NCBI RefSeq assembly: GCF_000400465.1
Contig: NW_008806295.1
Location: 30,001 to 62,000 of the forward strand
Reading direction: 5' to 3'
Length of the DNA stretch: 32,000 nt
Source: Wallemia ichthyophaga EXF-994
Lineage: Eukaryota; Fungi; Basidiomycota
The position numbers and the translations under genes were made by a program. The notes beneath the pieces are model-generated. The model did no database searches. It was not told the origin of the DNA and worked only from the letters and a program-made list of their open reading frames with translations. This document shows positions 1,392 to 17,335 of this stretch, piece after piece. The stretch's first letter is position 1. Every line of letters starts with the position of its first letter.

Positions 1392-4300
1392 CTACTCCAT
1401 CATTCCCTGGCTGTGAGCGAGTTTGTAGAATTCGCTCGATGTGTTAGACAGCAGCGAAGTGGGGCTATCCGACTCCACGACGCGACCCTCATCCATAACA
1501 ATAACCTGATCATAAGCGCTAATAGTGGATATTCTATGAGCGACGCTAATAACCGTGACGCCCTTGAGTGCAGTTTTGAGTAACGCGAGCAGTCTCTCAT
1601 CTGTCTTGGAGTCCATATTTGACGAGGCTTCATCAAGTAAGACGATTCTACGTTTCTGGAGGAGGATTCTAGCGATGCAGAGGAGCTGTCTTTCACCTGC
1701 ACTAAACTCCATCCCATCCGTCGTCACCTGCGTATCGAGTTTGTGTTCTAAGTCATTGACCTGTTTCGCCATACCGACATGGTCCAGCGCCCGCCATATA
1801 TCCTCTTGGCTAGCCCCCTCGCATCCCAAAATGAGGTTATCTTTCAGCGACGCATGCAGCAGGAAGGGGTCCTGGCTAATGGTGCTGATGCGCTTGCGCA
1901 GTGTGTGTAGTGGCACAGTCGCTAGATCTACCCCATCCACGATAATCCTGCCTGAGCGCAGCGGCTGACCACGGAGGAGAGCGTAGATAGTCGATGATTT
2001 CCCGCTTCCCGTGCGACCACATATTCCCAGCTTATGTCCCGCAGGCAGGGCTATGTTTAGGCCGTCAAGGGCGTTACGCGGTGACGATGTGGCGTACTTG
2101 AGCGAAACGTCGTCGTATGTTACTGCCCCGCTCTCTGGCCAGCTGGGGCTGGGTTCGGTTGTAGTTGCGGATGCTAGCATAGCGTCGTTGTTGTCGCTCT
2201 CGTTGCCGCTTTCGTCGCCCGCTATTTCACGTGCTTGTAAACTCTCTTCACTCTCGAGTTGTGTAATCTCGACTATGCGTTCGAGCGAAACGACACCATT
2301 CTCCACCCTTGTCCATGCCAGAAGAAGATTGGTAAGCGAGGTTGCCATGCTGACTAGCTGGGATAGCGCCACACCGAGGTAGCCGGCGCTGGTGGAGTTA
2401 CGCAGTCCGACGGCTATCGCTGCTATCCCGATAGCTATGAATGCCGTTACGAGGTTGAGAAATGTGCGCAGGAATCTTATCCCAGAATCACGGTAGTACA
2501 TCGGTGCCTGCGACCGGTTGAGATGCCATTCAGAGATATCCTTAAACATTGCCGTTGACTTGAACGCACGGATCGTTACTAGACCAGTGAGGAGGGTGCT
2601 GAAAGACGTGTAGAGCGGTGTCTTAGACGAAATAGTCAGTCGCTGCAGCTGTCTGCTCGTCGCGAGATATACTCTCTGCAGCGACCAGTATATCACAGCG
2701 AGGAAAGGAACTGCTATGGCGAGCCATGGGACTGCAATCAAAATCAGAATGGCAGCTCCGACCACATACACCGCCGTCAACGACACGTCCAGCATCGAAA
2801 TAGGGAACGCGAAATCGGATATAAATATATCCGATCCCCACCGATTGATCAGCAGTGCTGAACTCGTTTTCTGGAAATACGTTACTGGCGCTTCGAGTAC
2901 ATGCCCTAGCATCTGCTCATGCATGCCTAAACTGGCGCGTGGGGCTGTGTACTGCGTGTACATCCACATCATGCAGAAAGAACTGATGAAAGCGGCAACA
3001 GTGAAGCCTGCATACCCACCAAGCCATGGTCGATGGTCGGTGGTGTTTGCGCTGGACCATTTTTCGAGGTATATCTGCGTACTGTTAGTTGCGGATAGAG
3101 CACAAACAGCTTTGCTCACCTGCAGACCAACTTCTACAGCATTGTAGAAAAAGAGAAATGCTACGCAAACTGTTAGACGTCCCCAGCCACAATGACGCAT
3201 GTAGAATTTGTACGGCGTCCATCCAAGATTTGCACTGGCGTCTTCTTCGTCAGGATCCTCTTCCGTATCCACCGCCTCGTATTCTTTTCCGTCAATACTC
3301 TTGTGCTGGTGCGATGGTTTTTCAGCCAGTGCAGGATCACCCAACTCATTGAGTATCTCCTCCTCCTCTGTCTCACTTTTGACATGAGTGATCTCATTAT
3401 CCTCTTCCAACTCCTTGGGTATTTCACCGATATAGCTCTTGATGTCGATTACATTCTTGTAGAGCTCGCGTAGCGATCCTTTGGCGAGGATAGATCCACT
3501 TTCCATAGCAACGACAAAATGTGCAGCTGTGAGGTGTTTGTGGGAGTGCGTTACCATAACCACCGTCCGTTTGCCAAGCATACCCCTCGCTCCGAACAGC
3601 GCATTAAAGACGTGCTTGGTGGTATGTGCGTCGAGTGCACTGAAACAGTCGTCCAGGACTACGAAAGAGGTGTGGCGACTTGCGTACAACGCTCTCGCTA
3701 ATGAAATACGCTGCTTCTGTCCACCACTCACTCCGCCGCCCTTTTCGCTCAGCTGGGTCAGATCGCCTTTGGACATTCTTTCGAAATCATAAACCAAGGC
3801 ACAGCTCTCAACTACCTTGTTGTACCATTCGTAATCGTATTCAGAATCCAGGATTATATTCTCGCGCACGCTCGTTGGCCAAATAAAGGCTTCTTGAGGG
3901 GCATAGCTGATTTTCGTGGTAGGTCCACCAGGCACCTTCCGCCTGCCTGTCTGCAAGTGCGTCTCGCCGAGCAGTGTTTTGGCAAGAATAGACTTACCAC
4001 TACCAACTGGTCCGACGACAATTGATAGTTTGTCTAGTGGGAAGTTGATGTCGATGTCTTTGATAAGTGGCTTGGCGTCAGGCGCTGATGATGCACTCGC
4101 ATTCACATTCCATAATGAAGGTGGCCCGTCGTAGTCTCTATCGGACTTCTCGTCTAGCGACGCCGATTTCTCGGTGCCCGTGTATTTCAGCGTCTCCGTT
4201 GAGCTTCGCTCTGAATTTGGCAGCTCGCCTCCCAAACTCACAGGCTTTTCTTCGAGCAGAAGGAACCCTGCAATGCGCTTCATGGAAGCCCAAGACGCGA

Positions 4301-6072
4301 CGAGTAGTGGGAAGCAATGTCCGACTGTTGAAATGGGGAGCGTTACCAGATTGACAATGGTGTATATCGTGAACAGTGTTTGTGGACGGATATCTCCGCT
4401 GATTCCTGCAAAAGTTCCGAGTGCAGACAGACCAGCGCAGTTAATTGTAGCTGATGAGAGGACAACTACTATCACAAGACGACGGTAGAAGGCCTTCAAA
4501 TTGTCCACTTCTTTCGCTCGGAGTGGGTTGATCCATTTCGGCATCACAGGCTCTAAACCGAGCAGCTTCGTGGGGATGATTTGTTGCATTACTGATCCTA
4601 TCACTGCAAGTCGACCCTCTGTGCTTCCCATCCAGCGCTTTTGAGCACCAGATACCTTCTTGCCGACGATAGATGTTACGGCAAAGAAGGCAATCATGAC
4701 GCAGAGTGGTGGAATCATCGCGTAAGTGGCCAGAGGAAGTGGTTAGTGAGTGTGCGTGATGTTATAGGCTGTACTCACTTTAAACCACAGGATAACGGCT
4801 GCGCAGGCAATCGAAACTAAAGCTGACCAGCATTCGTGGAAGAAAATGACACCTTCGACGACTCTCTCGACATCAACCGACATATACGTAACGGCACTCC
4901 CTCTACCTTGATTCTCTGCAACGGTTGATGCTAGTCTTACTGATTTGTCGAAAAGAACACTGACCAGTGCTGCTCTGTATCTTATAACCATTGCGTAAAC
5001 TTTATCCCAGTAGAGCGCTGTAGTGGCTGCCAATGAGAGATACACGATTGCATAAGCTCCAACTAAGCCCCAACCGATATTTGGATCTTGAGGTGTCTCA
5101 GTCTCACTTGAGTAGCTGTCGATGAATGACAAGATTGTGGAAACGAGAAATGGTTGAGCGAATGTGACAGCAACGTAAAGCAGCTTTGGTATTACTGCAG
5201 CGAAGAAAAAGTCATAGAATGCTATTATGGAAGGCATCAAGATTGGCTGAGTCTCTTTGCCGGATTTTGAAACCTTTCTTGAAGAGTAGAGGAGCTTTGT
5301 GAAGCGCTTTGTGGCATCATTGCTGCTTAGCTCTTCAGGTAGACCGAATTCATTAACGTCATCCAAGTTGAGTGCCCTTTTGAATCCAGAGTATAAGACA
5401 GGGTAGAGGAAAGTAAATAGGATGCGCGAAGGGATTGAGGAGGTTGGCTCAGTTGCTTTAGGCTGGCGGGATTGTGAGTGATTGGTATAATTGGTGCGTA
5501 CAACACACCAGAACTGATGACTTGATCAGCCACCTCTTCTCGATCAACTCGGCAAAGAAAAGACAGCAAGTTGAAGCGAAGAAGACGCAGTATCCGGCAA
5601 AAAAATCATCACCAATCAAGTTGGCGTTGACGAAAGATCTCAGCTGAGTTGCGCTAAACAAGGAAGCTGTTGCCAAGTGAGCACTGATCAATGTCGATGG
5701 AGCATATGCTCGTGTGTGCTGAGCGTAGGATAGAGGGAGAAGTATGACTGAAGAAACCAGTTGCATAGCGTATGCAGCAGTTGCAGTATTGGTGTTGAAG
5801 TGATCGTAATGAAGAACACTTGCAATTGATCCGATCTGAATAAGGATAAGGATCAGCTTCGTGACCGATAGAAGATCGAATCTGTGCTTTGTAATTCTGG
5901 TGCGTGTCTTTTCTATCGCCCCCATTAACACAAACTTGGCCAAAGCTGCGAATACGAATATTGCCAGTGGAAGACACCACATCAGTCTCCACTGGAAGCC
6001 TAGCGATATGTCCATATAACGACATTGGCTTTCTGCCACAAAGTTAAACTCTCCCGGACAAAGTTTGCTCAT
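1392..6072 (-). CDS. ABCC/MRP-type ABC transporter (~1513 aa), TMD0-TMD1-NBD1-TMD2-NBD2
   Basis: Joins three track ORFs. Introns: 5508-5463 (46 nt, GTGTGT..CAG), 4778-4731 (48 nt, GTGAGT, branch CACTAAC, ends TG rather than AG) and 3119-3075 (45 nt, GTGAGC..ACTAAC..CAG, in-frame without a stop). NBD1: GPVGSGKS, VSGGQKQR, LDDCFSALD. NBD2: GRTGSGKS, FSAGERQLLC, LLDEASSNMD. Confidence 0.92.
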
Positions 6073-6319
6073 GTGTTGATGATTTGATCGATAGAGGATC
6101 TTAACTGATAATTTTTGATAACTGATCGTACCTGACTAGGGTTGTGTTCGCAGCAAACTCCGAAATTAATAAAATGGAAAACTAAAGCCGCTGATGGTAT
6201 TCGATCCTTTATCATATGGCCGCAGGCTTTTTAGAAACCTTATTCGTGTTTTTCCCGATTTTATCAGATTATCTTCGGGGTTTCCAATTTGATCGCAAGC
6301 TTGATCAGCTTAGCCGAGG
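6073..6319. promoter_or_regulatory. Divergent promoter (ABCC / A-domain gene) with a cluster of GATA sites, SreA/Urbs1-type iron-repression candidate
   Basis: 247 bp contains TGATAA at 6106 and 6116, TTATCA at 6209 and 6261, and TTATCT at 6269. 6261-6269 is the reverse complement of ATCTGATAA, which fits the SreA consensus ATCWGATAA. Confidence 0.6.
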
Positions 6320-8700
6320 ATGCTTGATAATTATACACACAACCCAATAAAGAGCCTTGGAACGCAGTCAAGAGTTCCAGAGCATGTCCCACGGCACTAC
6401 TCACTCGATATCACCGGTCCAGCTGGTCAAATTTCGAGCGAAATTGAGAAACTCAGCAGAGTCGCATACACTGTGCTTCTGATGAAGTATCTTGACACGC
6501 AGGATATCCTATTGGGTGAGACTTCCGTGGATTACATCGGCGATCCTGAAGCCACGCTGATTCAGCCAATCCGCGTGCAGCTGGAAGGAGGGGAATTATT
6601 GAGCCAAATATCCCAGAATATCGATCAGCAGCTATCTGCAAACATTCCGCTATCAAACGACGACGCTAGACTTGAACTGGGTGTAAAGGACCACGAAACA
6701 CCTCTACAGGCACTGTTTGTATGGGGAGTTGATTTAGTTACGTGCAGGCAGCATAACAGCCTGCTAATGGGTGGATACCTGTCTCACAATGGCTACACTT
6801 TGTCTGTCTATAGCGACGGCAGTCTGATATCATCCACCTCGCTCGGCGTTCTCCTCAATCAAGTCAAGGTGGTGCTGGAGAGGCTGCTGCAGCACCATGA
6901 GAACCTTTCAAATGTCCATATTGGGGAGGTGCTCAAGCCATTCCCTAAAAACCTCGCCTCACACGCTCAAAAGACACTGGACATGTCTCACCAACGCTTA
7001 GTAGTCGATTGGTTGTTCGATAACGCAGCAAGCAGGCCTGAAAAGATCGCCCATGAATGCTACACCGACCTGGACTCGCCACCTTCTCTACTCAGTTGGA
7101 ATGACTTTAACAGGCGCTCAAACCAACTTGCTAGGTGGCTTGTAGAGCACAAACGGGTGCAGCTCGAGGACAGAGTGGGTCTGTCGCTCCCGCGCTGCCC
7201 CGAGTTCTATATAGCTATGGCTGCTATTCTCAAGGCAGGTGGCTGCTACACGAGTGTGAGTCTTAGTCTGAGCCTGGGTCGATGAGAGCACACACCACTC
7301 ACACAACGCACAGATAGACCCAGAGCTACCCGAAGAGCGGAAGAAGTACATTGCAAAAGACAGCGCGTCCAAGGTGGTATTCACAACTAGCGAAAATCAG
7401 CACATATTCCCTCTTATAGCTGTAGACACGCACGACGCGTCGCTGTGGAGGCTAGTCCACACACTCAGCCCCTCCAATTTCAACTGCGCACAAGCTGACA
7501 GCCTGGCTTACCTTCTCTACACGAGCGGGACGACGGGGAATCCGAAAGGATGTCTCATCGAGCACAGAGCGCTGTATTGGGCGATGATAACTTTCGGTGA
7601 CTACCCCATACCGATCAGCAACCCAGACAGCGATAAGCGGCTGGCAATGGCTTCCTTGGCGTTCGACGTGCATATTTCTGAAATCACCCAAAGCTGGCAT
7701 GAAAAACTAGCATTGGTGACGGTCCCGCGGGCTCAGCTACTGGGCGATCTAAGGGAGTACATTGTGCGGATGCACATAACGCATCTGGGGATGGTGCCGT
7801 CGATGATCGAGGCGCTGCTCGAGACGCCCGATGGTCTCCCCCTCAAGTATCTCATTTCTGGTGGTGAGAAGATAACGCAAAATGTAAGATAATCCAATCA
7901 CCTTTAACACACCACAAACCCCTGACACCTCACAGCTGCTCGAAAAGTGGGCTAACCAACCCAACCTCGTCCTCGCGAATTTCTACGGCCCGACTGAGCT
8001 GACTATTGGGATATCAGCGCGCAAGGTGATGGCGCACGATACAAAGGAGAATGTCGGCAAAGTGTTTCCCTCTTGTGACGCATTCGTGGTCGACAGGGAT
8101 ATGAACATTGTCCCATTAGGTACACCAGGCGAGCTTGTCGTGGAAGGCGTACTGGCAGCGCGCGGATATCTCAACCTGGACCACCTCACCGCCAAGTCCT
8201 TTGTCAGGTACCCCACGCCTCAGAGCTGGGCATACAGGACGGGCGACTTGGTGCGTATGACGCCCGATCACTCGATCGAGATCATGGGCAGGATCGACTC
8301 GCAAGTCAAGTACCGTGGTGTGCGCTTAGAGACAGAGGGCGTGTCGAACATACTCCGCTTGGCATCTTCATCCGTGGAGCTCCTGGCGACGACGCTCATC
8401 ACACAGCACGCTTCTCTCAGTCAGCAAGTGCTCGTCAGTTTCGTCGCGCCGTCTCATTCTGGCGTCGGGGTGGTAGACAGGCGCACTACAGCGCCGACTA
8501 TCAAATATGACAGCGGCGCACTAGTAAACACTCTCAAGATGGCTGTCGATCGAGAGCTGCCTGTTTATATGCGCCCTGCTTACATTATACCGACAAATTT
8601 CATCCCGCTCACCCTCAACGGGAAATCGGACAACAAAGTCCTAGCCCAGCTTTTCAAGACAACGCCAATGCAGTCCCTACTAAAGTCACAGAGGGCGTGA
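6320..8700 (+). CDS. NRPS-like protein (756 aa): degenerate condensation-like N-terminus plus one adenylation domain of the fungal siderophore-synthetase type; no thiolation domain
   Basis: Introns 7256-7313 (58 nt) and 7884-7935 (52 nt) fuse three ORFs in frame. A-domain core motifs: A3 AYLLYTSGTTGNPKG, A4 FDVH, A5 NFYGPTE, A6 GELVVEG..ARGYLN, A7 YRTGDL, A8 GRIDSQVKYRGVRLE, A10 NGKSD. The stop follows about 20 codons after A10, and there is no GxDS phosphopantetheinylation motif. Confidence 0.88.
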
Positions 8701-8803
8701 TGCAGTGTGCAAACGCGGTAAAGTTTCTGACTCGATATAATGATGCATAATTTTGGTAATTACAAAGTTATATTGTATGGTATGGTATAGCGCGCGCCAT
8801 CCG

Positions 8804-11800
8804 CTAGTCGTCCTCCTCATCCTCCTCGATGACGGCCGCGGTCGCGACTGAAGGTCTCCATTTCTGGTGGTTGGAGGTATTTGGAGGAGTAGGAGACGTC
8901 GAAGTGGCGTTGGAGTTGGAGTTGGAGTTAGTAGTATGGCTACTGCCAGTGCCGGTGCCATTACCATCACCACCACTCCTTGGGAATTTGAAGTCGCTCA
9001 TCGTTTCCCTTGCGTCACCATTCTTCCTATTATTCGTCTTCTTGGACTTCTTGAGCTTTTTCACACCCTCGATCTCATCTTCGTCCGAGTGCTCCGTGAC
9101 GCTGACGTGTTCTTCGGCAACACTCGACTCAAACTCTCCAATAACCGCACTGGCATCGCCCTGTCCGATTCCGCCAGCGAAGTCGTCCTCATCCACCCAC
9201 TCCTCTTCCTTGTGGGAATGAGTGTGAGTGTGAGAATGGGTGTAGGTGTGAGTGTGCGGGTGAGTGCGTGACCGTGCATGCGCGAGTGCATTTGACTTTG
9301 ACTTGCTTTGCGCATGCCCACCTGCCGCTGTATCGAAAGTCAAATTTTTTGTTGGGGAAGTCCTGCTGTAGTCGAATTTGCTAGCTTTGAGGAGCGCGAA
9401 TGATTTCATTGGTGGTGAATGAACGCTGATTGGTGCAGGTGGGCGTTTTGATGCGAGGAATAGTGTTTTAGAGTGTTGTTGGTTAGTCGAGGAGTGGGGG
9501 AGGTGGTTTGTATGAGAAGAGCGGGTGTGCACCTTTGCATCGCCATCACCTTCACCATAGCCATCGACTTCACTATCGCGCAGCCCCAACCCGACCACCT
9601 TCTCGCCATTCTCCAACGAACTTGTCGACGTGCTCCGCGAATGTCTGCTGGTTGGCAGGGGAGACGAAGGAGCCCTCACATGGCGCACGCGCTGCAAGGA
9701 GCTCGACGACCCGCTTCTGTGTCTACCTGCGCGACCGAACGACGTATTCGAGCTGGGATTAATGCCCATACCCATACTCATCCGTCCACTCACACTACGC
9801 GCGCTGCTTACCGAAGACATGGAAGGCGACTTGGCGTGCTGTCCTCGCCCAACAACTCCCCCGCTGCTAACCCGCCGGTTCATCGCGGCCGATGGCGACC
9901 CGCTCTCGAAATGCACCGAGATACTCGAGCGGCGCGAATGGACGGAGGACGAGCGACGGGAGTGTGTCAAGGAATGAGATTGTGAGTGAGGCTGCGAGTG
10001 GGGCTGCGATTGCGTCTGCGGTACCGCCATAGCAACAGTTTGCGGTGATAGCATGCTTTGAGTGCTGCTACTTGACGCCCGTCGTCCATTACTCGACTTA
10101 CGCCTGTTGCGGCGATTTCTTCTGGCCTTGGACTGCGTCTGACCGCGAGTAGGTCCCTGTTTCGTGCGTGCGTTGCGTCTGCGCGGTGTAAGGGTGTTGC
10201 TGTTGCTGTTATGCGAAGCAGACCGCCGCATTTGCACCGTCGATGGGACCCCTTCAGATTCAGCTGCAGTTTCAGCGCCTTTGAGCTGACCCTGCGTCTG
10301 CTTCTGCTTCTGCTTTTTGGGCGTGGTCTTACCTTTCTTGCGCTCGCGTTTATCGTCGGTGAACCCTGTGGTGGTTTTGTGAGAAGAATCGCGCGTTAAG
10401 AGCTCACTTACAACCACGGAAAGCGTCCAACAAGTTTTTCTTGTCCTTTTCCTTGGTTACGGGTGAGTTTTGAATGTTAGGAGTGTTGTGCAAGTCGTGT
10501 TCAGACGCCGCCCGAGGTGAGTCAGTTGGTAACTGATTGAGCGAAGCTGTGGAGTTGAACTGGGCAGCATGTGAGATAGGAGGCGTTGTACTAACACTCC
10601 CACTCCCACTCCCGCTCACACTCAAACTCACACTGACACTATCATCATTACTCCCACTCCTTTCGTCGCTTTTCTTTCGAGGTAGCATACTCCCGCTAAG
10701 AGCAGTAGTGGCGCGCTGTAGCATGCTGATAGAGCTGCTGCGGCTCTTAGTCTTGTTAGGCGAACTAGGGGCGGACGTCTGCGGCAAGTTGAGCTGTAGA
10801 CTCGATGTTGACGCCTCGGTGGGTGGTGTTAGTGATAAACCCGATTCGTTGAGATCTGGCAAACTTCTTTTGGAGAAATCTGCGCGTTGGTCGCTCATTT
10901 TGAGTTTTTGTTTGTCTCTCTCAATGTCTCTATCTTTTTCTTTCTCTCTTCTATCCTTCTCCTCCCTCTCTTTTTCCGCTTTCTCCTTCTCTACTTTGTC
11001 GCGCTCCTTCTCTCTCCTCTTCTCCCTCTCCTCCTTCTGTTTACGCGTGTTGATCATGAGATACTCCTCTGAGTCGCGCCGCTCGCCACGCTCACCCCTT
11101 TCGCCAAGGCCGACGCCCTCCTCCTCGATACGAGTGAGATGTTCACGCGTATCGAGATTCTGCTTGCGGAGGAGCCACCACAGTCCACCAGACGCATCGC
11201 ACGCGTGGTTGATAACTGAGTGCTTAATCTGCCCGATATCGAACCCCAGCTGACTAAGCGACTGAAGGAGAGCGCGTTCCCACTCTTCCTCAAACGGCTG
11301 TGCGTGTTGAGCGGTGCACATTTCGAGATAATTCGGTTCTTGCGGGTGGAAATGGTGAAGATCGTCTGCGTTGGACTGGCCGAGATTGAAATTGGGATTT
11401 GGATTGAAGTTGACACTTTCCATCGATCCCACCTTGTAGTGTTCACGGAGAGAGGTGGTAGACGGGATGCGCGACGCGACAGGTGTAAGCACGGGTAAGT
11501 CGGACATGGTCGAGCTGACGCTGCGCCGTTTGGTGCGCGATGGCGTCCGTTGGATCGGGGGTGTGGATGCACCTTCGCGCTCACTAGATAGCGTGCGCAC
11601 CATGCCGCGCTTGAATGAACCACCTGAACGACGGGGGAGGGCTATCCCGGGTATACTCTCTACACTCAAGTTTCTAGTCATGCCGCTGCTTGTGGTCGCA
11701 GGGACTAGTCGTCGCGGTGGCTCGTCCAAGTGGTTCACATCGCTCACACCCTCGAATACCTCCGTCGCTTCACTCTCTCCTTCGCTTATCTCGCTCACGT

Positions 11801-12916
11801 GTTTCTCGTCGTACGCGTAGCTGGCGTGCTCGGCTGTGTGCTCGAGCTTGTCATGGAGAGTGTGCAACGGGGTTTGCTGTGATGGGAAGCGGGTGAAGAA
11901 TGGATGGGCGAGGATTTGTTCGATACTCGGACGATTTTGTGGGAGTGGTTGAAGGATTGCGGAAATTAGGTCACAAGCATCTGAGACATGTGAGAAAAGA
12001 AAGACGAGAAAAGAAAAAACGCACCAGCTGAAAGGACATCAGTTGGATGATAGTATTCTCCTTTCAACACCAACTCTCTCATTTCATCCTCGTCATCATC
12101 GTCGAAAGGAAGACCACCAGTGAGAAGAGCGTAGAGGATAACGCCAGAACTCCAAATATCAGTTTCTGGGATGTCAAGTGTGAGTAAGGAATTGTCGAAT
12201 GCAAATGAGAAACCCACGCTTTCCACCATATTTTTCACCGCGAAGCATTTCAGGAGAAGCGTACGCAGTTGTGCCGCACCAAGTACTCATAAGATTCCCA
12301 GGGCCATCATCAAACTCCCTTGCAAAGCCAAAGTCGCCTAATTTAACGTTTCCGTCTTTATCGAGGAGAATGTTCTCGAGCTTCAAGTCGCGGTGAACAA
12401 CACCATTAGAATGAAGGTAGTGCAGCGCCAGCATAAGCTGACCGAAAACTCTCCTAACCTCCACGTCGGACAGTCTTCCTTTGTCGACGAGATAATCGAA
12501 CAGCTCACCGCCATCACATAACTCGGTGACGAGGTGGATGTCGTTCTCGGTGGCGACTATCTCAAGGAGTTGAGCGATGTGGGGGTGCGATAGGCGCCGA
12601 TAATGGTGCAGCTCTCTAACCAAAGCGCTGAGCTGAGTGTGGTTTTTTGATACGCTCTTCACAGCAACGCGTGCACCTTTGATGAGGCGATGAGTGGAGA
12701 GACGCACGATACCATAACTGCCACTGCCTAAAGTACGGCCGAGAGTATAATTGCCAATCGTACGCAAGGCAGGGGAAGTTAAATCTTGAGTTAGATTCTG
12801 ATAAGCCTGAGCGAGCTGGGGGTTTTTAGATATAAACTGAAATAAATCAGAATTCCCACCTGTGCTTTTTTGTTCTTGTTGTTCCTTTCATTGCTCGTAA
12901 TCACGGTCTTGCTCAT
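8804..12916 (-). CDS. Ser/Thr protein kinase, CAMKL (Ppk16/MARK/SNF1-related) family, with UBA-like segment and long low-complexity tail (1308 aa)
   Basis: True ATG at 12916 (MSKTVITSNERNNKNKKAQ|LAQAYQNL..IGNYTLG). Introns: 12859-12816, 12217-12166, 12024-11981 and 10411-10366; spliced length is divisible by 3. Kinase motifs: GSGSYG, VAVK, HRDLKLEN, DFG, CGTTAYASPE, DIWSSG. Confidence 0.9.
9211..9283 (-). repeat. Imperfect CACACT-type hexamer repeat in the kinase CDS encoding an alternating-His tract (HARSRTHPHTHTYTHSHTHTHSH)
   Basis: Plus strand reads gagtgtgagtgtgag...gtgtgagtgtgcgggtgagtgcgtg. Confidence 0.7.
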
Positions 12917-15169: not shown

Positions 15170-15356
15170 CACTTACTCAAATCAAATCCGATAAAATCTG
15201 ATACCGCCATTAAACTCATCTAGCTCTACTCATCCCAAAAACATCTCGTTCCTTACAATCCGATTGAATCCGATAATTTTTTAACCGCTATCAGATAAAT
15301 CAGCCTAATCAGATCATCTATCAATCAGACAACCAACACCCATAAAATCTGGAAAG
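15170..15356 (+). promoter_or_regulatory. Promoter/5' leader of the siderophore importer with a tandem ATC[ACT]GA(TAA) array
   Basis: ATCCGATAA at 15186, ATCTGATA at 15196, ATCCGATT at 15258, ATCCGATAA at 15268, ATCAGATAA at 15290 (exact ATCWGATAA), ATCAGATC at 15308 and ATCAGAC at 15324. Confidence 0.68.
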
Positions 15357-17335
15357 AGTAAGTGAGCCAAAGGCCTGGATTGTAGCAAATCTAACACGCC
15401 CTAGTGAACCCTCCACCTGGCTACGCTGATGAAGCTGCTACTCCACATGTTCCCCCTCTCAATGTTCGCCAACAAGACAAATTCGGCACCCAGGCAGGTA
15501 CTTTGAAAGCTATAGCTGCCAAGCAAGTATCCAACAAAGCCATGATGGTTATCCTCATCTATTTCCTTGGTCTTGCTGCTTTCATGATGAATTTGGATCA
15601 ATACACCAACTACACCCTCCTCACTCAAGCCTTTACAGACGCTAATAACGTTCAAGCTCAATATCAAGTTGGTGCTGCAACTGCCATTCTTCTTGCTGTC
15701 GGTAAACCGTTCTTTGGAAAAATGTCAAATGTCATCGGTCGTCCTGAAGCTCTAACTGTCACGCTTTTCTTCATTGTTCTCGGTTATGTCGTTACTGCTG
15801 CATCTGATAAGCTTGTATCAGGTCTCGCCGCAGGTCAAGTTTTCTGGCAACTTGGCTTCTCCGGCTTCCAAATCCTCCTCAACATTATTGTCGCAGATAA
15901 TACAAACCTCCGTTACAGAGGATTTTGGACTGGTATGATCAACGTATGGACTTTTGTCCTTTTCGCCTTATCCTCTCCAATCATTAGTGCCGTTAAATCA
16001 GGTTTAGGTTGGAGGTGGGCTTTCGGATTGGAAGCTATTTGCTACCTTCCTGCCTCTCTTCCAGCAATTCTTGTTCTCTTCTTGAACCAATACCGTGCTA
16101 AGAAGGCTGGTTTAATCAATTATCAGGACCAGCCACTCACTTCTGGTCCATGGAAGTCACGCATTTACCAATTCATTGTCCAGCATGATGTCATAGGTCT
16201 ATATCTCCTTATCGCTACTCTCTGCTACATTTTCTTGCCAATCATTCTCGCTGGTACGAGTGCCCTTCTAGCATGGGACAATGCTTACGTGCCTGCCTCG
16301 ATGGTCGTTGGAGGTTTCATCATTCTCCCCGCTCTCATCTACTGGGAACTGAAATGCGCTTCCTTCCCAATAATTCCACACTACTTCATCAAAAATATCA
16401 ACATCGTAATCACGTGCCTGATCAACTTCTTTGACTTCATTTGCTTTTACCTTTCTTATCAGACGCTGAGTAACTACATGGCTGTGGCTGTAGATTGGTA
16501 TACGGATTTAGAGAATGGTGAACCTCGTTTGAGCGGCGACTCTAACTATTATTCTTACTGCCAGAACATTAGTTTAACCTTCTTCGGTATTGCTTGGGGT
16601 ATCATTGCCTCTGTCTTCAAACCTAATTGGAAGTGGTCTGTTGTTGTCGCACTCTGCATTAGACTACTCGGTGTTGGATTGATGTTGTACGCACGTGACA
16701 ATCGTAATCTCGGTGCACTAGTTATGACGCAAGTTTTACAAGGTGCTGGTGGTGGTATCGCTGCAATCGCCACGCAAGTAGGTGCGCAGGGCAGTGTTCC
16801 TCAGCAACAGATGGCTCTTGCTACCGCTGCCATTCTTCTTTTTGCAGAAATTGGTAATGTTGTTGGCCAATCCGCTTCCTCGGCCATCAATTCTGCTTTC
16901 CTTCCACAGATGATCGCAGAGCAATTCCCATCATGGAGTGCAACACAAGTCAACAAATACGTCAGTGCTCCAATGTCCGCTGTCAAACTTGGTCCAGTCG
17001 GTACAGAGCAGAGAGATAAAATGATACAAGCATTCTCAAACAATCAGCGCAAACTCATCATTCCAGCCATCGTTTTCGGCTGCGTGCCTATCATTCTCTC
17101 CTTATTCCTCAAAAACTTCAAGCTCGATGAGCGCCAAAACGCAGTAGAAGATCTCGATGAAAACGGCCATGAAGTGCTGGCGTATGATTCAGAACGTACA
17201 AATACCCATGCAAATGGAGATTTAAATGAAAATGCGCGCGATAGCCACTCTGAGGCCGATGAGGATCACAAGGATGATCACAAGTCATCTCCAAAGGAAA
17301 CCAATCCTAATGGTGGCCATGAATTGTCCCATTAA
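15357..17335 (+). CDS. MFS siderophore-iron importer, ARN/SIT1/Str family, 14-TM type (643 aa)
   Basis: Start codon is split as A(15357) | intron 15358-15404 (GTAAGT..TCTAAC..TAG) | TG. Family-like motifs: KP...K.S.VIGR.EA, Q..NIIVAD.TNLR.RG, GWRW.FG, VGAQGSV, LF..IG..VG, LDERQN after the last helix. Confidence 0.88.

Follow-up and report, generated by a model that had tools for sequence, protein, structure and literature searches.

Relation to described siderophore synthetases

Fungal siderophore synthetases follow a non-linear logic in which few adenylation (A) domains serve several carrier (thiolation, T) domains, as seen with dissected ascomycete enzymes. Closest to the gene described here are the type VI synthetases, CsNPS2 of Ceriporiopsis subvermispora and CC1G_04210 of C. 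cinerea, which are nonribosomal peptide synthetases (NRPSs) with the architecture A-T-C-T-C-T-C (C, condensation domain). Brandenburger and colleagues reportedly found in 2017 that CsNPS2, which activates both L-AHO (N5-acyl-N5-hydroxy-L-ornithine, hereafter AHO) and L-AMHO, produces a linear trimer of AHO. Here we analyzed a gene at positions 6320-8700 (+) of a 32,000-nucleotide stretch of Wallemia ichthyophaga EXF-994 (contig NW_008806295.1, positions 30,001 to 62,000; hereafter the window), which encodes an A domain that stands apart from any carrier domain, as trans-acting A domains do.

The window protein shares a half C domain and the A domain with the type VI synthetases, and its A domain is 45-52% identical to those of the type VI genes of Meira, Lentinula, and Ceratobasidium. 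The likeness extends to intron positions and to the cluster partners, namely an ABCC transporter, an enoyl-CoA hydratase, and an ornithine monooxygenase, all of which are shared with the lineage of truncated genes to which the window gene belongs. The three carrier and three condensation domains of the type VI enzymes, however, are all missing from the window protein, which cannot produce a peptide alone. The gene appears to descend from the first 30% (half C and A) of a basidiomycete type VI hydroxamate-siderophore synthetase.

A second group of reference systems is formed by SidN, SidC, Sib1, and Fer3, whose A3 domains share the pocket signature DV..(I/V)G.IGK with the window protein. The AHO-activating A domains of the ferrichrome type are embedded in synthetases of 4,500-5,000 amino acids, whereas the A domain of the window is separately encoded and has its own putative iron-responsive promoter. 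Fso1 and Fer3 are candidate partners rather than whole-protein homologues. In Fer3, the third A domain is intact, and Ustilago yielded no stand-alone homologue. The ABCC neighbor in the window belongs to the same transporter class as Fer6. In bacteria, EntE, DhbE, and VibE are separate adenylating enzymes of siderophore assembly lines, each charging a carrier on a different protein. These are aryl-acid-activating ANL enzymes without a C remnant, whereas the window protein is of the amino-acid type and carries a half C domain.

Judged from the sequences, we lean slightly toward the view that the gene encodes a functional, iron-regulated, free-standing A enzyme, which would load AHO in trans onto the carriers of a separate siderophore synthetase. 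An iron-type promoter, a conserved transporter partner, and, in Schizophyllum fasciatum, a neighboring synthetase with a dead third A domain, none of which had been mentioned in a first-pass annotation of the window made from its letters only, point to such a specific role.

A complete adenylation domain without a carrier domain

The W. ichthyophaga gene consists of three exons on the forward strand (6320-7255, encoding amino acids 1-312; 7314-7883; and 7936-8700, which ends with the stop codon), and the spliced product has 756 amino acids. Both introns are of the GT..AG type and in phase 0. The first (7256-7313, 58 nt) lies within motif A2 (LKAGGCYTS|IDPELP), and the second (7884-7935, 52 nt) follows GGEKITQN. 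Both positions are common to W. ichthyophaga, Wallemia hederae, and Armillaria (Armillaria fumosa). In comparison to the deposited W. ichthyophaga model E3P91_03426, only two residues differ (LVTCR/LVACR and CPEFY/CPKFY), which points to a different W. ichthyophaga strain.

Three parts can be distinguished in the protein, which are an N-terminal domain (amino acids 1-228, 6320-7003), an adenylation core that is split by both introns and contains motifs A1-A7 and the pocket residues (amino acids 229-622, 7004-8295), and an adenylation C-terminal subdomain (amino acids 623-756, 8296-8697), which carries the A8 hairpin GRIDSQVKYRGVRLE and the A10 residue Lys732 (8623-8625). The core motifs YTSGTTGNPKG, FDVH (with D430), NFYGPTE, YRTGD, GRIDSQVKYRGVRLE, and NGK(732)SD are intact. 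D430 is invariant in the ortholog alignment, and the position equivalent to residue 517 is a lysine wherever it is covered (K732 in the window protein). In the Pfam scan, AMP-binding (PF00501) matched residues 234-581 with an E-value of 1.5e-67 and 228.5 bits against a cut-off of 29.9, the AMP-binding_C match was weak, and neither a PP-binding nor a Condensation domain was detected in the 756-amino-acid protein. With PF00501 above its gathering score and motifs A3, A5, A7, A8, and A10 present, the protein has the hallmarks of an NRPS adenylation domain. A weak AvrPto match (E 0.12) in the same scan was dismissed as meaningless.

The window protein is thus a complete A domain behind the C-terminal half of a C domain, without a T domain. 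The first-pass annotation had described intact motifs A3-A10, canonical introns, and a stand-alone A enzyme with no space for a T domain, and had proposed a domain scan. The gene model, the Pfam results, and the alignments bear this description out.

The N-terminus is half a condensation domain

Residues 1-228 had no match in Pfam, and a profile of the N-terminal domain from the orthologs, when compared with the sequences of the Protein Data Bank (PDB), reached an E-value of only 0.62, with the C domain of McyB. As this comparison is too weak by itself, the identity of the domain rests on profile-profile and fold comparisons. With hhalign, the profile of eight orthologs aligned to a profile of 31 NRPS C domains with a probability of 95% and an E-value of 3.4e-8, covering columns 259-447 of 486. 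The AlphaFold model of the N-terminal domain had a predicted local distance difference test score (pLDDT) of 79 and a predicted template modeling score (pTM) of 0.77, and when it was compared with the PDB by Foldseek, all top matches belonged to the C-domain family (E about 2e-7). The template modeling scores were 0.5-0.6 over the query (TMq) and about 0.3 over the target (TMt), the latter indicating that the model covers about half of each C-domain target. The AlphaFold model of the whole protein (pLDDT 65), in which part of the A core (residues 373-471) was unresolved, was left out of the pocket analysis.

Residues 1-228 are the C-terminal subdomain of a C domain, and the half that bears the HHxxxDG motif is absent. 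The C-like character that had been suspected for this region is therefore real. With one subdomain only and no HHxxxDG motif, the window protein does not have a competent C domain. The N-terminal domain is alignable and homologous between the window protein and its type VI relatives.

The protein ends at the A-T junction

The 756-amino-acid protein is closed by a conserved terminal helix, FKTTPMQSLLKSQ, followed by RA, and 24 residues lie between the A10 lysine K732 and the C-terminus. When nine loci were compared by reading through the gene ends, the stop was found two residues past a conserved "...LL..Q" motif, whereas in the full-length relatives the frame passes from this motif into the A-T linker and then into a T domain. 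The stop codon of the window gene (TGA, 8698-8700) accordingly lies two codons past the entry point of the A-T linker in the full-length type VI homologues. As the truncated relatives stop after the same motif, the end of the window protein at the start of the A-T linker is a family trait.

A spacer of 103 bp (8701-8803), which could not encode a carrier domain, separates the stop from the end (8804) of the next open reading frame (ORF), which is on the minus strand. When the T-C-T-C-T-C portion of the Meira homologue was used as a tblastn query, no match was obtained in the 32-kb window (best E 4.6), so that the misjoin or T-C continuation that had been named as a potential objection left no T or C remnant there. 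An assembly or annotation artefact, with the T-C-T-C-T-C continuation misjoined or placed elsewhere, would nevertheless be in line with the frequently wrong deposited models of this family, among them those of the full-length genes of Meira, Lentinula, and Ceratobasidium, which were deposited in pieces or cut short. We regard this explanation as extremely improbable, because the stop is in frame and a convergent gene ends within 103 bp of it, W. hederae has the same arrangement of stop and neighbor in an independent assembly, the sequence cluster containing E3P91_03426 has 13 members at 90% identity or more, the window lacks T and C remnants, and seven other species stop at the same place beside unrelated genes.

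Truncated and full-length members of the family

Sequence searches yielded about 15 close relatives, all from Basidiomycota, and at each locus the DNA was read past the annotated gene end to tell true stops from cut models. The truncated architecture was found in at least 10 species of two classes, with carriers in Wallemia (3 species), Armillaria, Cylindrobasidium, Hymenopellis, Rhodocollybia, Collybiopsis, Schizophyllum, and Peniophora, and with a stop 0-4 residues past the same tail motif. True stops of this kind were read at eight loci (W. ichthyophaga, W. hederae, Armillaria, Peniophora, Schizophyllum fasciatum, Cylindrobasidium, Rhodocollybia, and Collybiopsis), and unrelated genes follow the stop at the truncated loci. 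The Hymenopellis locus is syntenic with the Cylindrobasidium locus.

Other homologues run in frame into T-C-T-C-T-C. Meira miltonrushii has a single uninterrupted ORF of 2540 amino acids with A, three PP-binding, and C domains, and in Ceratobasidium the A domain and T-C-T-C-T-C extend across two gene models. The T-domain motifs of the full-length Meira, Lentinula novae-zelandiae, and Ceratobasidium proteins are GLSSL, GLDSL, and GMDSI. These three genes are type VI siderophore synthetases with the order half C-A-T-C-T-C-T-C, which is the CsNPS2 architecture, and they carry the same pocket residues as the truncated proteins. The kinship with CsNPS2 that the first-pass annotation had suspected from motif variants and the degenerate C-like N-terminus is thereby supported.

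A number of genuine type VI synthetases are broken up or shortened in the deposited records. The 2540-amino-acid ORF of Meira was deposited as a partial "acetyl-CoA synthetase-like protein" of 575 amino acids, the Lentinula gene as at least five small models, and the Ceratobasidium gene as models divided midway through the A domain. In our locus numbering, the wrongly cut models lie at L003 9398-17020, L008 10001-~17600, and L009 10001-18339.

In a neighbor-joining tree of the A domains (18 sequences, 521 columns, 200 bootstraps; outgroup, chytrid NRPS domains), one clade with 82% bootstrap support united the truncated proteins, and its Agaricomycete part had 100%. This clade was sister to a clade of the full-length Lentinula and Ceratobasidium proteins (100%), and the full-length Meira protein was basal. 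Lentinula (full-length) and Rhodocollybia (truncated) are both Omphalotaceae but were separated in the tree, which argues for an old split and not for recent repeated truncation. With moderate confidence, we take the tree to indicate a single ancient truncated lineage that extends from Wallemiomycetes to Agaricomycetes.

The truncated lineage is under strong purifying selection. Between W. ichthyophaga and W. hederae, the nonsynonymous divergence (dN) was 0.15 and the synonymous divergence (dS), which is saturated, was about 2.4, giving a dN/dS ratio of 0.06. By part, the ratio was 0.035 for the A core and 0.10 for the half C domain. Between Armillaria and Rhodocollybia, the proportion of nonsynonymous differences (pN) was 0.21 and that of synonymous differences (pS) was saturated.

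One member of the family has taken a different course. In Peniophora sp. CBMAI 1063, contig UWZB01000357.1 (L012 10001-11561) contains an eroded second copy, annotated with 280 amino acids, that matches the intact Peniophora protein at amino acids 1-76 and 225-562 and lacks residues 77-224 and everything after 562. This copy looks like a decaying, pseudogene-like sequence. It had come up in a search with the N-terminal-domain profile, which returned only fragments of the same family, and is not a full-length paralogue.

The eroded copy shows that decay happens in this family, and the window protein does equal the 5' third of a longer gene family, as would be expected if it were a functionless remnant left after the loss of T-C-T-C-T-C. 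The window gene, however, has an open frame, canonical and shared splice sites, intact motifs, and a dN/dS of 0.06 at saturated synonymous sites, its architecture is kept in two fungal classes, and the eroded Peniophora copy looks quite different, so that decay is a very improbable explanation. The first-pass annotation had preferred selection over decay and had suggested a dN/dS comparison across orthologs. This preference is upheld by the low dN/dS in comparison with W. hederae, together with the single clade of at least 10 species, the shared introns, and the retained ABCC neighbor.

In a search of a representative library, multi-module NRPSs crowded the matches, since the scores summed over their modules are higher than those of the single-A relatives. 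Some matches reached into the N-terminal region, and the chytrid A domains found in this way supplied the outgroup of the tree. The nearest multi-module relatives in this library were NRPSs of 4,700-7,000 amino acids from Saitoella and from chytrids of the genera Spizellomyces, Powellomyces, Gaertneriomyces, Cladochytrium, and Rhizophlyctis. Their AHO-like pockets (DV.[DG].G.IGK) hint at hydroxamate siderophore synthetases in chytrids.

In the literature searched, we found no account of the truncated lineage, and databases label its members as hypothetical or "acetyl-CoA synthetase-like". Although the parts of the protein are known, no fungal siderophore A domain that is free-standing and conserved, and that possibly replaces a dead domain in cis, is described in this literature.

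Substrate pocket

The pocket residues of the window protein are D430, V431, S434, G471, I493, G495, F518, I526, and G527. The ten-position code reads DVSGIGFIGK in Wallemia and DVSGVGFIGK in those Agaricomycete truncated proteins that cover all ten positions as well as in the full-length proteins of Lentinula and Ceratobasidium. The 17-position code is also the same in the Agaricomycete truncated forms and the full-length forms (Lentinula, Ceratobasidium AG-Ba).

The best single-domain PDB match of the A domain was SidN A3 (3ITE, 246 bits), which is the AHO-type domain of a hydroxamate siderophore synthetase. Codes assigned to AHO are DVLDIGFIGK in Sib1 A3, DVLDIGGIGK in ChNPS2 A4, DVLCIGAIGK in Umsid2 A2, and DVSSGGAIMK in Umfer3 A3 (Bushley et al., 2008, PMC2644324). 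The signature DV..(I/V)G.IGK is common to the window protein and AHO-type domains, which suggests a substrate of the AHO type, the acyl group of which cannot be read from the code.

The A8 hairpin and A10 were invariant in the alignment. Both are needed for the thioester-forming half-reaction.

Divergent ABCC transporter and predicted iron-responsive promoter

Head to head with the A gene lies an ABCC/MRP-type ABC transporter gene (1392-6072, minus strand; ORF pieces 1392-4718, 4743-5366, and 5458-6072), whose product has a TMD0 and two units of ABC_membrane and ABC_tran according to Pfam. The same pairing was found in W. hederae, Armillaria, S. fasciatum, Cylindrobasidium, Rhodocollybia, and Hymenopellis. 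In Ustilago maydis, the iron-regulated ferrichrome A cluster contains the MRP-type transporter Fer6 (PMC5561558).

The two genes share a bidirectional promoter of 247 bp (6073-6319) with WGATAA at 6106, 6116, 6209, 6261, and 6269, which corresponds to 20 per kb in comparison to 1.5 per kb in the window. A full SreA-type site, ATCTGATAA (6261-6269, minus strand), matches ATCWGATAA, the SreA consensus of A. fumigatus (PMC2610380). The window contains five ATCWGATAA sites where 0.72 are expected. Across eight promoters of stand-alone genes (3.3 kb), we counted ten such sites, as compared to 0.047 per kb in 258 kb of flanking DNA, an approximately 65-fold enrichment, and the full 9-mer was present in six of the eight divergent promoters. 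We infer that the gene pair is probably iron-regulated via SreA/Urbs1-type GATA sites in the shared promoter.

The tight and ancient pairing with the transporter could also be explained by a non-catalytic role, in which the protein would be a ligand-binding or regulatory subunit, such as a sensor of AHO or ATP that modulates the ABCC transporter or a synthetase, with the conserved terminal helix [ML]xxL[LM]xxQ as a potential interaction surface. We give little credence to this possibility, because the P-loop, A5, A7, A8, and the A10 lysine are all invariant, which a pure binding protein would not need, and because dN/dS is lowest in the catalytic core (0.035).

The window contains another transporter gene of interest, which encodes a major facilitator superfamily (MFS) protein (15404-17335, +; 6.7 kb from the A gene) that is named "Siderophore iron transporter 3" in the EXF-994 annotation. 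Upstream of it are ATCAGATAA at 15290-15298 and CGATAA at 15189 and 15270, and the gene is kept at the same place in W. hederae (E3P99_00645). The MFS transporter is thus a possible, non-adjacent member of the same iron regulon.

Candidate partner synthetases

If the A enzyme acts in trans, a synthetase with carrier domains is needed elsewhere, and there are precedents for such loading. SidC A3 was shown to charge carrier domains at a distance of two modules with AHO (Jenner et al., 2023, PMC10192304), and it also loads separate C-T proteins in trans, provided that C precedes T (PMC10192304). For W. ichthyophaga, one siderophore NRPS elsewhere in the genome (XP_009269655) and three "siderophore-like" proteins (XP_009270084, XP_009269961, and XP_009267579) have been described (Jancic et al., 2016, PMC5201246).

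In three Agaricomycete species, the truncated gene adjoins genes of the hydroxamate pathway or of a siderophore NRPS. The Collybiopsis copy is divergently paired with an ornithine monooxygenase gene (Lys_Orn_oxgnase), and an enoyl-CoA hydratase (ECH) gene is nearby. In Peniophora, it is placed after the terminal C domain of an NRPS. In S. fasciatum (MU975455.1), the order is ABCC transporter, A gene, and a Fer3/Fso1-like NRPS of 4569 amino acids. The A1 pocket of this NRPS begins with DP.., as does that of Umfer3 A1 (assigned to Ser), and its 17-position A2 code, FSDVLDYFTIILTAIIK, resembles that of Umfer3 A2, FSDVQDWHTTIYTAVVK (assigned to Gly). Its third A domain (L004 21048-22630) has lost the P-loop, with FEGAHASSTQA as opposed to FTSGSTGxPKG. 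In the wider motif, AYITFEGAHASSTQASLVSH stands in place of AYxxFTSGSTGxPKGVxxSH. Motifs further on are lost as well, with AGM where GGE is expected. The third A domain of Fso1 from O. olearius also has degenerate core motifs (PMC2644324). The S. fasciatum enzyme and Fso1 therefore appear to be of the ferrichrome A type without a working AHO-activating domain. A dead third A domain with an AHO-type A gene next door leaves an unfilled role that suits the stand-alone enzyme. We had also considered the S. fasciatum NRPS as a recent donor of the A domain, which was rejected because its A domains are just 29-31% identical.

An enzyme that works without any carrier would form AHO-AMP or a related adenylate and transfer the acyl group to CoA, an amine, or a hydroxyl, so that the ABCC transporter would handle the product or precursor and no NRPS partner would be required. 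This is unlikely in our judgment but has several observations in its favor. The ABCC transporter, and not an NRPS, is the sole neighbor kept in nearly all loci, the half C domain is without the catalytic HHxxxDG half, and amide formation by A domains without C domains is known from SidC A2 and the stand-alone enzymes PacU, CouL, and NovL (PMC10192304). However, the A8 hairpin and the hinge for the pantetheine-dependent half-reaction are conserved as in the full-length enzymes, the A gene is adjoined by siderophore genes in the three species mentioned, and the S. fasciatum NRPS without a working AHO domain leaves a role to fill.

Loading in trans by an iron-regulated free-standing A enzyme, which we prefer to the carrier-independent reaction, could proceed as follows. 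Upon iron limitation, the GATA repressor would leave the shared promoter. The enzyme would then form AHO-AMP and pass the aminoacyl group in trans to phosphopantetheinyl carriers of a separately encoded synthetase, with the half C domain serving as a structural platform or docking face. The likeliest partner would be a Fer3/Fso1-type ferrichrome synthetase with a degenerate third (AHO) A domain, or else a separate T-C protein without an A domain, and the Fer6-like ABCC transporter may handle or export the product. More specifically, Wallemia and many Agaricomycetes may possess a two-protein ferrichrome system, in which a synthetase with a dead A3 is served in trans by the half C-A protein, which would have been taken over from the type VI lineage in the distant past and retained under the iron-responsive promoter that it shares with the exporter. 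This is a tentative proposal, about which we are slightly more doubtful than convinced.

Several points weigh against loading in trans and the history we propose for the gene. In the 32-kb Wallemia window, an NRPS, an ornithine monooxygenase, and an acyltransferase are all absent near the A gene. ABCC transporters also serve as general detoxification pumps. The shared promoters of S. fasciatum and W. hederae are without the full 9-mer, and the partner argument draws on one NRPS, that of S. fasciatum, which was read over its first 9.5 kb. The clade with 82% support comes from a distance tree of 18 sequences, so that independent truncations or rate artefacts may be behind it. Finally, specificity codes predict substrates only weakly in fungi (Bushley et al., 2008, PMC2644324), for which reason the AHO substrate is a prediction from the pocket and not an assignment.

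Other genes of the window

The convergent gene downstream of the A gene (8804-11867, minus strand) has its kinase domain at 12174-12767 and, downstream of the kinase domain, a very long low-complexity tail rich in Ser, Thr, and His, with runs like HTHTYTHSHTHTHSH. The deposited W. hederae model joins the kinase to a class I/II aminotransferase (L006 12471-18262, 1765 amino acids), which is probably a mis-merge. Further ATCWGATAA sites of the window are located at 15802, 25478, and 28661 (+), inside the MFS gene, antisense to a nucleoside-transporter ORF, and in a kinesin gene, respectively.

Implications

If loading in trans is true, the truncated lineage would be a natural and ancient case of A-domain replacement in trans in fungal NRPSs, with the conserved, separate AHO-type A domain as a naturally occurring subunit for loading in trans. 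It would also explain the hydroxamate supply of Fso1-type enzymes with a degenerate third A domain, an anomaly that was noted in 2008. For genome mining, the finding would correct calls on proteins that are listed as "acetyl-CoA synthetase-like" or "hypothetical", and NRPS engineers would obtain a small, portable hydroxamate-loading enzyme. Wallemia is an extreme halophile with very few secondary-metabolite genes, and one more component of its iron acquisition would now be marked.

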